Below are positions 41,364 through 47,300 of a DNA stretch of 64,000 nucleotides, in pieces. The stretch covers positions 3,038,001-3,102,000 of the forward strand of contig NC_043017.1 of assembly GCF_006345805.1 (NCBI RefSeq), written 5' to 3'. This stretch comes from Octopus sinensis (taxonomy: Eukaryota). The position numbers were made by a program, and so were the translations under genes. The notes beneath the pieces are model-generated. The model ran no database searches, had not been told where the DNA came from, and saw nothing but the letters and a program-made list of their open reading frames with translations. Numbering within the stretch: the first letter of the stretch is position 1; each line of letters begins with the position of its first letter.

Positions 41364-44300
41364 CTGTTCGCAAATACAAAAGAAAGGATTTCAAAGAGTA
41401 GAACTAAAAGAGGAACTGACAAAAAATATGGAGCAAAATGGACAGAGAATGAAGGTATAGAGAGCTGGATGCCTCCTAATTTGTTGTCTTAGTTTATGTT
41501 GCCCAGGAACACCAGAAAGATCTCGGCAGGTGTCCTCTAAGACATTTTTCTCCACATCTAACACACGAAACTTTCAGCCTCAGGTCCCTCTCATAGCTGC
41601 GCTACAGAAGTGACGGAGAGAGAGCTGCTATTGAAGACCCATAGAATAATAATAATTGTATAATAATAATTGTATAATAATATATCATATTCTCCAATTT
41701 GAAGCGACATTTTCTAAAAAAAATTATTATACTATGAGTCTTCCATAGTAGCTTTCTCTCCGTAACTTACTGCTGCTTCGACGATGGGTCAGAATATGTT
41801 AGTGTTGCTGATCCCGCTGCCATTTAAGCTCCAGTCATATTGAAATAATAAGAAAAAATTTCATTTAACTCTGGATCTAAAGCATTGTTTATAACAAGTA
41901 TTTATCTTGGATGTATTTTTAGTGTGTTCGATATAATTTTTGTTATTGCCTCGAAGATATATTGTCAAATAATTGCCATTACGAGGATGTGATATAATAT
42001 TGCTCCAGATGGATTAAGTTAGAGAATCGGTGTGATTAATTCTATAGTTGTAACTATTAAGTTAACGAATGTTTTCAGCGAAAATGTAACTAGTTTTTAC
42101 ATGGTCGTTTTTTTTTTTTATTTGCGGTTGTTTGTGGTTTGGGGCAAAAATCTTTGTTCAAGACATCACATTGTTAGGAAATCTCTCGTAAATTTGGAAT
42201 TAATACTGTACTGAAGAGGGTTGAGACATTATTTTTTTCTTATTTTTATTCGCCAGTGTATCATAACTTTGTATGAACAGTATATTTTCTTTGAATACGC
42301 TATATTTTAATGCGTTATTATAGTCAGGTTTTGTGAAGCATACATACCGGAACCTGATTTACGTAAAATGTATTTCAAATGCAACAATGAAATGGCATTA
42401 ATGATTAGTTATATTAGGATATCGACTTACTTAGTAAAGACCAAGCTTCATCTCCTTCAACTATGGGTCTTATCCAGCGTGACTTCTTCATTTCCGATAA
42501 CCCAGTTCCTTTCGGCGGATAAATTGTCCACAGTATTTCCATGATGTCCACTTTACTAAACACGTTTAAGTTCCTGGGGTCTTCTAAAATGGTTTGCATA
42601 AAAAAAATTAAGAAACGAGATTTCTGAATAAGAACCAAATACATAAGTTTCTTTATTGGCCACACAGGGCTGTACACAGATGGGACAAATTACAAGGTAG
42701 AGCTTTTCTTTTGTGGGATGAAAAAAAAACAAAAAAAAACAAAAAACAAAAGAAACAAAAAAAAAGTGGCGTAGGTTTTCGATCAAAAGGGATCGTAAAA
42801 GGGGAAAAAGAGAAAAAAAAAGAAAAAAAAGAAAAAAAAGGAAGAAAAAGGAAAATAAAAATAAAAAAGGAAGAAATAAGAGGAAAAAAGGGGGAGAGGA
42901 AAAAAAACGATCAAAAATACATAAACAATAAAGCGAGTCGCCACATCAAAGGGGCAGTTGAATGTTACTACTAGGTTTAGCCCCTTGTGGGTAGTAAAGA
43001 AATGGATATACGGGATCAAGGCTGACATGAATTAAACAACTACAAAATAACAATCCTTTGGTTCTTCACAAACAAGGGTCGATCAAAAGCTTCCTCTCAC
43101 CTGAATCATTTCTGCTTTTATTAGCAAACATATCCAACAACAGGTCAGCCAATTCTGCGATACTGTCGTAAGCTGACAACCGGAAATCATAAAGTGAATT
43201 TTTCACCACTAACTGACTATCTTCTGTTCTCACGTGTTCACCAATTCCTGTTGTGTTAAAAGAAAACAGAATAGAAAAAAAAGAAAACGAGAAACGAAAA
43301 TTTGGTAATTGATTCGTAGTATAGATTATTAATTTACATCATCTAATCTGACCTTCATCTTCTTTTCGGATGAGACAGAATCATTTTGGGGCGATTTCGT
43401 TCTCATTCCTAGCAGTTTAAACCACTGTTTTGCGGGTCGAATTTGTGGATCGCTCTATCTTTGTATAGGAGCAAAGGGGGGACCCGATGGTAACGAATAC
43501 ACACACACACACACACACAGACACACACACATACACACACACACACACACACACAGACACACACACACACACACAAACAAACGCACGGAAAGAGTGAAAA
43601 GGATAAATCGATAGATAGATAGAGAGAGAGAGAGAGAGAGAGAGAGAGATACAAACAGACAGAAAAGTGGACAGACAGACAAGCGGGCGGGCGAGTGGGC
43701 AGAGACGTAGACGGACAGACAAAGAGATAAATAGACAGATAGGGAGATAAATAGATAGATAGAAAGATAGATGCATGGGTTGTTACACATATATATATAT
43801 ATATATAGGCAGGTAGGTAGGTAGGTAGGTAGGTAGGTAGGTAGGTATGTAGGTAGGTAGGTGGGTAGGTAGGTAGATAGGTAGGTAGGTAGGTAGGTGG
43901 GTAGGTAGGTAGATAGGTAGGTAGGTATGTAGGTAGGTAGGTGGGTAGGTAGGTAGATAGGTAGGTAGGTAGGTAGGTGTGTAGGTAGGTAGATAGGTAG
44001 GTAAGTAGGTAGGTAGGTAGGTATGTAGGTAGGTAGGTGGGTAGGTAGGTAGATAGGTAGGTAGGTAGGTAGGTGGGTAGGTAGGTATGTAGGTAGGTAG
44101 GTGGGTAGGTAGGTAGGTTGGTAGGTAGGTGGGTAGGTAGGTAGATAGGTAGGTAGGTATGTAGGTAGGTAGGTGGGTAGGTAGGTAGGTAGGTAGGTAA
44201 GTAGGTAGGTGGGTATGCAAGCATAAACGGAGAAATAACTTTTACAGGGAAAAACGAAAAGACAGCCAAGAATGAGGCACAAAAGTCCGATCTGTTCATC

Positions 44301-47300
44301 AGTTGTCAACGCTTGTTTCGTTACTTACCTATAAGGTATATATCTGTCCCCTCATGCCTAAGATTCGCTGACTCCAAATGAACTCTCCTACGGTGCAAGG
44401 CTTGGCCACCGGTCAGTAATACACACGCTTTTTGACACCAAGGTCGGGTGTGTATCTAGAAGAAAACAGGCACAGATATAGCACAGATGTATACTTATAC
44501 GCACACCATCATATAAACATACAAGTATATATATAATATATATATATATATATATATATATATATATATATATATATATATATATAATATAAGACCAGGA
44601 CAGATAACAAAGCCACCACCCCACTGCCGGAGCCTCGTGGAGCTTTAGGTATTTTCGCTCAATAAACACACACACAACGCCCGGTCTGGGAATCGAAATC
44701 ACGATCCTACGACCGCTGCCCCAAACCACTGGGCCATTGCGTCTCCACTATATATATATAATATATATATATATATATATATATATATATATATATATAT
44801 TATATATATATATATATAATATATATATATATATATATATATATATATATATATATATATATATATTATATAATATATATATATTATATATTATATATAA
44901 TGAAGGGTGAAATTAATTATTTGGAATAATTATCAATTACACCAAGTAGTCTTCGGCATGTAAGTAGAAGAAATAGCTATAACTCTTTGACTGCTATTTC
45001 TAAATTCGGTATGTGGTAAGGCAATTCGTTGCTAAAACCCTTTATTGCTTAGTATTACTTATATATATATTATATCTATATTATATATATATATATTATA
45101 ATATGTATATATATATATATATATATATATATATATAATATATATATATATATATATATATACATATATACATATATATATATATATTAAGTATATAATG
45201 ATAAAATATGATTATAATAAGGGCTACTGGAAATAACCAGAAGTAGATGTCAAATACTTTCAATACACTCTAAAATTTTGTCCTTCTATATTCGACCACA
45301 TCTCGAACGGGAAGGGAATGAGCAAGAAAATCTACAAAATTTTGGGTAATTCTATATCTCGAGATTTCATGCTCTGCATTCATCAGACTTAATAACGAAA
45401 TACGTATCAGAGCGATACAGTATAAGATAAAATAAGAAACAAGAGGAGAAAGGATGTAGAGAGTCTGTGGGCAAGATTTTGTAGACTGTTGGGAACTATT
45501 TACAAATCAGTCAGTCTGGGATAAGTACGATAGATTAACAGCCTCATTAGGCCATTGACGTGGAAAGGATAATGTCTTATATATCCAACTGGAGTTTTCT
45601 GGGCGATTAGCAACAGTCTATATACTGAGTCTGAGAAAGGCTAATCTTTGAGATGTACTTTTAACTATATTATGCTTATGGAACGCCAGACATTGTGTTT
45701 TTGGCATTCGTAGTACCTTAGAGATTTTGAGCGCTTTCATGTATAATAAAATAATAATAATAATAATAAAACATTGTGTACAGTGCTCAGGTGCACTACA
45801 ACTCATCTAAAGTGTATGTATAATCAGGTGTAGTTTCGGCGGATTTCGGAAAGCATGAGGGCCTTAAAGGATGCAGTGTCATGGCAGTCAACAACTGACG
45901 CAGGCAGTTTGTATTAAAGAGAACATGTGCGTGTGTATGTGAGAAAGAGAGAGAGAAACAGAGAGACAGACTGTGTGTGTGTGTACTCGTATGTGCTTGT
46001 ATATACGTGTGTATGTTTGCATTCGCTTTAACTAAAAAGATACAAAGCAATGCAATGCATGCTTAGGTGTACTCACCCTCATCGTATTCTGTACAGCAAT
46101 CAGTGCTTCACTAATTCTTGATGGACCACTTTCTGGCATCACACATCCTAATAAACAAAGCAACAATCTCGTATGAGTCTTAATATATACCGGGACGATA
46201 TTCTTTATCACTGAGTTATACAATAGTAACGCACCCGGTTATGCAAGGTAAGCGTTTTAGCTGCAACACAGAAGTAGACTTTATGAATGTATAACGCAAT
46301 GATAACATGTATCCAGTCACAAAGAACAGTGATCTTGTTCTAGAACAATAATTTCCAGAGGGGCGTGAGTATGTGTGTGTGTGTATGTATATATATATAT
46401 ATATGTGTGTGTGTGTCTGTGTGTGAGTCTCTGTGTGTGTATGTATATATATATATATATATATATATATATATATGTATGTATGTATAGTTGATCACGT
46501 ATGTACAATACCCATTACAGGTGTAAATAGTCACACAAATGGTTATAAATTGCATTTGATCTTTCTCTTTCTCTCTTTTCTCTCTCTCTCTCTCTCTCTC
46601 TCTCTCTCTCTCTCGATTATATATATATATATATATATATATATATATATATAATATATATATATATACAGATATATACATGGATGTATATATGACCATT
46701 CCGAATATAACAATATATATATATATATATATACGTATGTATAGTTAGAGAGAGAGAGGGGGAGAGAAAGAATCAGTAAGAGAGAGAGAGAGAGAGAGAC
46801 GGGGAGTTTCACCAACCAATTTTCAAACATAAGGCTTTGGGGGGGAAAATACGTGACATACAGAAATAGAACCTGGAGTCTCGTTGTTACAAAGCGAAAT
46901 TCTCAAGCACACGTCCATATGCTTACTCCTAGATATACATAGACATACAATTGAAGCATCACTGAAATCTACCAGTGACAGGTACATTACCAATCTTTTC
47001 CAAGATATTCACTTTTCGCAGTTTATCTTGCAAACGACAATGGAACTGGACATTTCCTGTAAATGTGGCAAAACCGATTCTGTTCTGATAAGGATGTTCG
47101 GCCATCGATCCGACCAATAATTCACATAAAGTTTTAGAAACCATGAAAAGGTCTTCGGGAATTTCATTGGAATTTTCTAGTAAAATTATCAAATCGATTC
47201 TGTTCTGGCAACCTGAAATGAAATCAGTTGAAAGAGAATTTAATATACACGAATGTTTGTGTGTGTGTGTGTGTGTGTGTGTGTGTGTGTGTGTGTGTGT

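Follow-up and report, generated by a model that had tools for sequence, protein, structure and literature searches.

A probable old insertion of a VWA domain into an IQCM-related gene shared by Octopus sinensis and other lophotrochozoans

The subject of this study is a block of four exons at positions 43101-47212 of a 64,000-nucleotide stretch of the Octopus sinensis genome (contig NC_043017.1 of the RefSeq assembly GCF_006345805.1, positions 3,038,001 to 3,102,000 of the forward strand), designated the window, whose numbering is used throughout. The block lies in LOC115222736, a minus strand gene whose product is labelled 'uncharacterized' in RefSeq. A first-pass annotation, made from the sequence alone, had proposed that the four exons encode a complete VWA domain, captured in frame by an intracellular protein related to IQCM, and that the whole block could be skipped. 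The analysis described here indicated, with good although not complete confidence, that the block consists of the VWA exons of LOC115222736 with no evidence of skipping, that the domain was acquired in a single old lophotrochozoan insertion and that its metal ion-dependent adhesion site (MIDAS) was subsequently lost in octopods.

The four exons encode a VWA domain

The exons, designated a to d in the order of transcription, have 222, 71, 127 and 147 nt, respectively, a total of 567 nt or 189 amino acids on the minus strand, and all of the peptides quoted in the first-pass annotation, including YDSIAEL, were present in the spliced translation. Exon a (46991..47212) encodes β1-α1-β2-β3 and carries a degenerate first MIDAS motif, ENSNE as compared to DxSxS. 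The MIDAS threonine was lost from exon b (46077..46147; GPSRIS as compared to GLTRT in relatives), which ends in phase 0, and the MIDAS aspartate was lost from exon c (44329..44455; LLTGG as compared to TDG in relatives). Exon d (43101..43247), which ends in phase 1, encodes the last strands and the C-terminal helix. All of the exon junctions had the form AG...GT, with polypyrimidine-AG acceptors and GTAAG, GTGAG or GTAAT donors. The RefSeq protein XP_036367700.1 matched the independently spliced model of the window with 100% identity and 100% coverage.

When compared with Pfam, the block matched VWA (PF00092) with an E value of 6e-14 and a score of 53.1 bits (gathering score 23.8), and the match extended from position 1 to 171 of the 174 profile positions. 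The full octopus protein scored 49.3 bits. A model of the protein generated by AlphaFold2 (AF2) from a 12-sequence family alignment showed the alternating strand-helix topology of a VWA domain between residues 350 and 527, with six strands, seven helices and a predicted local distance difference test score (pLDDT) mostly between 80 and 90. The Foldseek matches for this part of the model were the vWF A1 and A3 domains, the integrin α1 and α2 I domains, collagen VI N2 and mussel PTMP1, with template modelling (TM) scores, normalized to the target, of 0.75-0.81 and E values of about 1e-10. Thus, the profile search and the structure prediction for the assembled protein both gave VWA, the latter with a TM score of about 0.8 to vWF-A and integrin I domains, and the block in LOC115222736 is a genuine, near full-length VWA domain.

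The extracellular VWA domains of collagen VI, vWF A1/A3, integrin α I and mussel PTMP1 were the best matches of the octopus domain in both sequence and fold. The nemertean VWA domain matched collagen VI α3, PTMP1, collagen VI α2 and the integrin α1 I domain. These matches support the assignment of the domain to the extracellular matrix/adhesion type, the closest solved relatives being collagen VI, PTMP1 and the integrin α1 I domain. The octopus domain differs from its extracellular counterparts in that the host protein has no signal peptide and every MIDAS residue is gone. The cysteine pair that flanks the domain was kept only partly within the family. Signal peptides and transmembrane segments were absent from the host proteins, in agreement with the earlier description of the host as an intracellular IQ protein, and a cytoplasmic location is predicted. 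Cytoplasmic VWA proteins are not unusual, examples being the copines and Rpn10 of the proteasome, and a VWA domain often has a MIDAS but need not have one.

The host protein is related to IQCM

In the host protein, an N-terminal region is followed by an IQ motif and a helical segment, then by the VWA domain and lastly by a C-terminal module with the signature WT.YPP...SRW.RPI..GEEAW. Pfam detected only VWA and a sub-threshold IQ motif in this protein (15.1 bits against a cut-off of 20.3). The putative octopus IQ motif matches a custom pattern at residue 230 and aligns with the IQ motifs of relatives that lie above the Pfam cut-off. It is encoded by exon 7 (50408..50522), which starts in phase 2 and ends in phase 0, and it corresponds in the family alignment to that of mammalian IQCM. 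The helical segment corresponds to exon 8 (49405..49552), which was placed by spliced mapping and the family alignment and ends in phase 1. The final host exon preceding the VWA block is exon 9 (48123..48260), a symmetric 1-1 exon of 138 nt, and the family signature motif resides in exon 14 (42431..42583), a symmetric 1-1 exon of 153 nt. The two exons that flank the VWA block had been correctly identified in the first-pass annotation, and only their numbers, 8 and 13, require revision, since they are exons 9 and 14 of the 15 coding exons in RefSeq. The exon preceding the block had also been described as EF-hand-like, an assignment that was not confirmed in that IQ was the only Pfam match (E<=1) when the sequence was scanned with the VWA domain removed. 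The exon 9 region formed two short helices in the AF2 model.

A 52-column profile was constructed from the contiguous exon 14 translations of Octopus, Argonauta and Ruditapes and used in a HMMER search of 1.8 billion representative proteins. There were 113 matches at E<=1e-3 and the profile retrieved the whole family, including five mammalian clusters named 'IQ domain-containing protein M' with E values from 7e-6 to 6e-4. Word-indexed searches were insensitive for this family, giving two matches with the 448-residue model, three with the C-terminal region and five with a 12-sequence profile that did not widen the taxon range.

An alignment of 21 family members obtained with MAFFT was colinear throughout, the segments being, in order, PH.EIF, the IQ motif, the helix EYKDL..R.Q.RYG, FF..C.LYPT..EI and E.LWT.YPP…SRW.RPI..GEEAW. 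The VWA domain was the sole large block missing from IQCM and had the appearance of one clean insertion. The distance between the IQ motif and the C-terminal motif was 312 residues in Octopus, or 123 residues when the VWA domain was subtracted, as compared to 122 residues in the IQCM of Cynocephalus, and the first-pass annotation was correct with regard to the spacing of vertebrate IQCM. The assignment of the host to IQCM was likewise borne out, by the exon 14 profile matches and by the colinear alignment, on the basis of which the host is a member of the family that includes vertebrate IQCM and belongs to a separate, VWA-bearing subfamily.

Vertebrate IQCM (XP_062963557.1 from Cynocephalus volans) is colinear with the octopus protein, has the same spacing once the VWA domain is removed and, like it, has no signal peptide. 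However, IQCM lacks the VWA domain and falls in a clade of its own, with support of 100/100, and for these reasons the octopus gene is described here as a family member rather than as a 1:1 orthologue of IQCM. In humans, IQCM is listed as testis-specific (PMC7436996). No paper that links IQCM to a VWA domain was found in the library searched.

Inclusion of the VWA exons

The block is bounded by phase 1 introns and, as had been pointed out in the first-pass annotation, the join of 48123 to 42583 is in frame (...KKVHR-K-DPRNLN...). The skipped product would have 470 residues in the case of isoform X1, rather than the approximately 444 residues that had been estimated. It could be argued that the block is an optional cassette and that skipping of the four exons yields an IQCM-like isoform in some tissues. 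The skip would preserve the reading frame, the skipped product would restore the spacing of IQCM to within one residue (123 as compared to 122) and alternation of 1-1 exons does occur in the family, since isoform X3 of Gigantopelta exhibits an apparently mutually exclusive swap of motif exons, the only alternative splicing seen.

Several observations argue against this interpretation, 1) none of the annotated isoforms and models lacks VWA, the domain being kept in X1 and X2 of O. sinensis, in the models of O. vulgaris and Argonauta and in X1-X3 of Gigantopelta, 2) the four exons would have to be removed together, 3) phase 1 symmetry is common to nearly all of the exons in the 3' half of the gene and is also found in the relatives that have no VWA and 4) the selective constraint on the VWA domain resembles that on its flanks. 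With regard to symmetry, exons 9, 10, 13 and 14, as well as exons 11 and 12 taken as a pair, are symmetric 1-1 exons in this gene, and the same is true of their counterparts in the VWA-less relatives. Because the symmetry is so widely shared, it says nothing specific about the skipping of VWA, and the in-frame skip is a by-product of a region in which nearly all of the introns are phase 1. With regard to constraint, the ratio of nonsynonymous to synonymous substitution rates (dN/dS) between Octopus and Argonauta was 0.157 for the VWA domain, 0.119 for the region before it and 0.116 for the region after it, values that are rough given that dS was about 1.8 and thus saturated. By this measure, the VWA domain is under purifying selection similar to that acting on its flanks. 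The skippable cassette proposed in the first-pass annotation was thus unsupported, and we consider it unlikely that the block is optional; low-level or tissue-specific skipping of the VWA exons is given an equally small chance.

Distribution and age of the fusion

The strongest matches to the exon 14 profile were proteins with both a VWA domain and the C-terminal motif, from the gastropods Patella vulgata, Lottia gigantea and Gigantopelta aegis, the bivalves Sinanodonta, Mytilus, Saccostrea, Pinctada and Ruditapes, the nemerteans Tubulanus and Lineus and the annelid Lamellibrachia. Most of the full-length VWA-bearing models also had an IQ motif. A profile based on the VWA domains of octopus, Argonauta and the clam detected VWA in every one of these gastropods, bivalves, nemerteans and the annelid, and the Pfam scores for VWA in the three relatives that were scanned (Sinanodonta, Tubulanus and Lamellibrachia) were 97-118 bits. 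The Ruditapes protein was colinear with residues 261-639 of the octopus protein (E=2e-50).

The architecture of the lophotrochozoan orthologues, IQ motif, VWA domain and C-terminal module, was the same as in octopus (Lottia V4B378, Patella XP_055959503.1, Mytilus XP_052090764.1 and Saccostrea XP_062593126.1). Further orthologues are the Ruditapes protein, annotated as 'collagen alpha-1(XIV) chain-like', Tubulanus XP_074656744.1, Lineus XP_064653040.1 and Lamellibrachia KAI0209287.1. The orthologues fell in the same clade as the octopus protein and had equal intron positions and phases where these were checked. The structure of the VWA exons was compared in four species by exact spliced mapping of the proteins onto their loci. 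The exon lengths were 222/71/127/147 nt in Octopus and Argonauta, 222/71/124/129 nt in Ruditapes and 225/74/124/129 nt in Tubulanus, and the phases were 1/1/0/1/1 in all four. Because the gene structure of the VWA block is the same across species, the insertion, together with its internal introns, would have taken place before molluscs, annelids and nemerteans diverged. Judged in this way, the age of the fusion is approximately that of the Lophotrochozoa.

The suggestion that the fusion is possibly lineage-specific therefore holds only at the level of the Lophotrochozoa and fails for octopus or the cephalopods, since bivalves, gastropods, nemerteans and an annelid share the architecture. Nor is the fusion novel, a possibility that the first-pass annotation had allowed for, since public databases list such proteins under the names 'uncharacterized' or 'VWFA domain-containing'. 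Public gene models thus include the VWA domain, while no earlier link to IQCM was found. There were no VWA-bearing members from outside the Lophotrochozoa among the named matches to the exon 14 profile.

A second, paralogous exon encoding the signature motif (…CALC.FILPRIQ..GLYKSEV.EILWTIF.P…) was observed in gastropods. The standard motif exon was replaced by the paralogous copy in Gigantopelta isoform X3, and the two copies appear to be mutually exclusive. The Patella and Lottia models contain both copies in tandem, and the nemertean proteins resemble the second type.

Origin by exon shuffling

VWA modules of the extracellular type are usually bounded by phase 1 introns. The two ends of the fold are close together and, as a consequence, integrin I domains tolerate insertion within another domain. 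Both sides of the VWA block were found to be phase 1 in Octopus, Argonauta, Ruditapes and Tubulanus.

The family members that have no VWA domain are vertebrate IQCM, including an electric ray protein, the long proteins of Lingula, Ylistrum and Tubulanus, which have 1400-1770 residues and additional IQ motifs in long N-terminal extensions, and a protein of the rotifer Adineta. Introns were mapped in three of these, the scallop Ylistrum protein (P0083), another of the long proteins (P0079) and the Adineta protein (P0074). Lingula was excluded from the comparison because the edge of the contig was reached before the relevant exons. The module shared by the three mapped members is encoded by exons of 121/145/135/150-156 nt with phases of 2, 0, 1, 1 and 1, and the counterparts in Octopus, with the same phases, have 115/148/138/[VWA]/153 nt. 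Thus, the long paralogues and the Adineta protein share the C-terminal IQCM-like module, the intron phases and the exon sizes with the octopus gene. Where the octopus gene carries four VWA exons, however, they have one phase 1 intron. This single intron was located at the codon of the VWA insertion in all three (…VILQ/GQL…, …VVLH/GHD… and …AVLK/YYP…, the slash marking the intron). Since it is shared with the rotifer, the host intron is older than the insertion of VWA. The empty site supports the exon shuffling that had been deduced in the first-pass annotation from the intron phases, and exon shuffling is the likely origin of the block, the class of donor indicated by the sequence matches being the VWA domains of collagen VI, PTMP1 and integrin-like proteins.

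A maximum likelihood (ML) tree was calculated from 224 host-only columns and left unrooted. The 13 VWA-bearing proteins lay on one side of a branch with support of 89/86, the long paralogues were grouped at 93/91 and vertebrate IQCM at 100/100. The order within the VWA group (nemerteans, annelid and molluscs) corresponded roughly to the species tree. Both VWA-bearing and VWA-less paralogues are present in nemerteans and bivalves. The simplest history would be a duplication followed by one gain of VWA on the VWA branch. A long VWA-less paralogue was not detected in the octopus genome (2.7 Gb) by an exon-by-exon search of low sensitivity, which matched only the exons of the window itself (exon 14); by the same search, the C-terminal module was single-copy.

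An alternative is that the domain was ancestral to the whole IQCM family, in the common ancestor of bilaterians, and was then precisely and independently deleted from vertebrate IQCM, the long lophotrochozoan paralogues and the rotifer proteins. The unrooted tree is compatible with this scheme, because a root placed on the branch that separates the VWA group from the rest makes one loss as good as one gain. However, nemerteans and bivalves carry both types of paralogue, the named profile matches contain no VWA-bearing member from outside the Lophotrochozoa, and each loss would have to excise exactly four exons and leave one intact phase 1 intron. An ancestral VWA domain is thus very unlikely, more so than an optional cassette. 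The proposal that the exons merely lie within an intron of an IQCM gene, as part of a nested gene, as a decayed remnant or through a chimeric annotation, for which nothing speaks except the general unreliability of automated models (the fused O. vulgaris model and the split O. bimaculoides and clam models described below), can be rejected almost with certainty, since the exons are on the same strand, in frame and flanked by canonical splice sites, conservation of exon lengths and phases extends over three phyla, the dN/dS values indicate purifying selection and at least 13 species show the same colinear arrangement.

Loss of the metal site in octopods

All three elements of the MIDAS were replaced in the octopods, the sequences being ENSNE, GPSRIS and TGG in Octopus and ENCNE, GPPRLQ and TSG in Argonauta. 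Among eleven non-octopod relatives in the alignment, DxSxS was intact in eight, while the threonines of GLT.T and the TDG motif were intact in all eleven, and total loss of the MIDAS was confined to the two octopods aligned. The Pfam VWA score of the octopod domain was about half that of its relatives (49 as compared to 97-118 bits), and the octopod stem branch in the host tree was long (0.79). Taken together, the loss of the MIDAS, the long branch and the low dN/dS suggest that the mode of partner binding of the octopod domain may have been altered and that the domain has not decayed.

A more elaborate possibility is that the matrix-type domain of octopods was repurposed as a metal-independent module and is also skipped in some tissues, testis for example, regenerating an IQCM-like isoform. 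We regard this combination as improbable, slightly more so than skipping taken by itself. If it were true, the sole family member detected in the octopus genome would have two functional states.

Proposed history of the VWA subfamily

The VWA subfamily most likely has a single origin, no later than the last ancestor shared by molluscs, annelids and nemerteans, when a matrix-type VWA module with flanking phase 1 introns would have entered a much older phase 1 intron within an IQCM-like gene. The division of the domain into four exons would have been retained since that insertion. In most lineages the MIDAS is intact, and the domain probably contacts a partner by way of an acidic residue that coordinates the metal. 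In octopods, all of the MIDAS positions were replaced and the protein evolved rapidly with purifying selection maintained, so that the domain is most likely a metal-independent protein-binding module. The host protein may bind calmodulin through its IQ motif and is probably cytoplasmic, and, by analogy with the testis-specific IQCM, it may have a role in sperm or cilia.

A number of points weigh against this single old insertion and the constitutive inclusion of the domain in octopus, 1) many of the 113 profile matches are short unnamed fragments that could conceal VWA-bearing members outside the Lophotrochozoa, 2) support for the single VWA clade is moderate (89/86), 3) the absence of a root means that a gain of VWA is favored by the distribution among taxa and is not proven, 4) the empty-site comparison leaves out vertebrate IQCM, whose genes extend over 281 kb and 368 kb, 5) the inclusion of VWA was deduced from gene models and sequence constraint and 6) the Octopus-Argonauta dN/dS values are affected by the saturation of dS noted above.

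Structure of the gene and its surroundings

Exact spliced mapping of the protein onto the window showed that LOC115222736 has 15 coding exons on the minus strand, extending from 59847 to 41137. Coding exon 1 of isoform X1 (59798..59847) contains the start codon (MESHLKK...). Coding exons 2-6 (56486-56330, 55269-55167, 53927-53813, 52937-52809 and 51669-51592), which together span 51592..56486, encode the N-terminal region, a part of the protein that was modelled with low confidence by AF2 (pLDDT <50 for residues 1-161 and 174-204). The C-terminal segment and the TGA stop codon are in exon 15 (41137..41363). The intron that follows coding exon 3 is of the GC-AG type, with the donor GCAAGT at 55167, and the remaining introns of the gene are all GT-AG.

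There are two annotated isoforms in O. sinensis, X1 with 659 residues and X2 with 542 residues, which differ at the N-terminus only and both of which include VWA. The O. vulgaris model (CAI9738656.1), which has VWA, differs from that of O. sinensis at a few residues and is fused to the upstream gene for betaine-homocysteine methyltransferase (BHMT). The model from Argonauta hians has 430 residues, is 63% identical and includes VWA. Public gene models of the locus are inconsistent across octopuses and the clam. The O. bimaculoides locus is split into two partial models, LOC106880066 and LOC106880068, and the Ruditapes gene is apparently also split, since open reading frames that resemble the N-terminal segments of the octopus protein are located inside the neighboring upstream model. 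Three tandem serpin genes, each encoding 391 residues, lie directly downstream of the Argonauta hians orthologue on the opposite strand.

Five copies of a dispersed repeat resembling a short interspersed nuclear element (SINE) were present in the window, at 20991, 34678, 47590, 53560 and 54593. Each copy is about 22 nt in length and is part of a longer element; several are within introns of LOC115222736, and the number expected by chance is 0. A tRNA-like Rfam match (54221-54295, minus strand, 34.8 bits) is intronic and near one of the SINE-like copies. The introns of the VWA block are crowded with microsatellites (43806-44215, 43499-43579, 44526-44899, 45060-45187, 46618-46693 and 47254-47341), among them a 410-bp array of the (TAGG)n type and extended stretches of (TA)n and (AC)n, which give long spurious open reading frames on the minus strand.

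Conclusions

These results do not overturn the current understanding. The novelty of the fusion in octopus was not supported, and the locus represents an old domain insertion in a little-known family, together with the loss of the metal site in octopods. IQCM is almost unstudied, and the analysis places it in an old bilaterian family, one lophotrochozoan branch of which carries an inserted VWA domain of the matrix type. The family is thereby defined by a signature motif and by an intron map that is conserved, and it offers a natural comparison of proteins with and without the domain. The locus also provides an unusually clean case of exon shuffling, in that the module, both of the phase 1 introns at its boundaries and the intron of the empty site, in the paralogues and the rotifer, can still be seen after several hundred million years. 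Finally, the loss of the MIDAS in octopods under continued constraint represents a small, testable case of a domain that may have switched its mode of partner binding.

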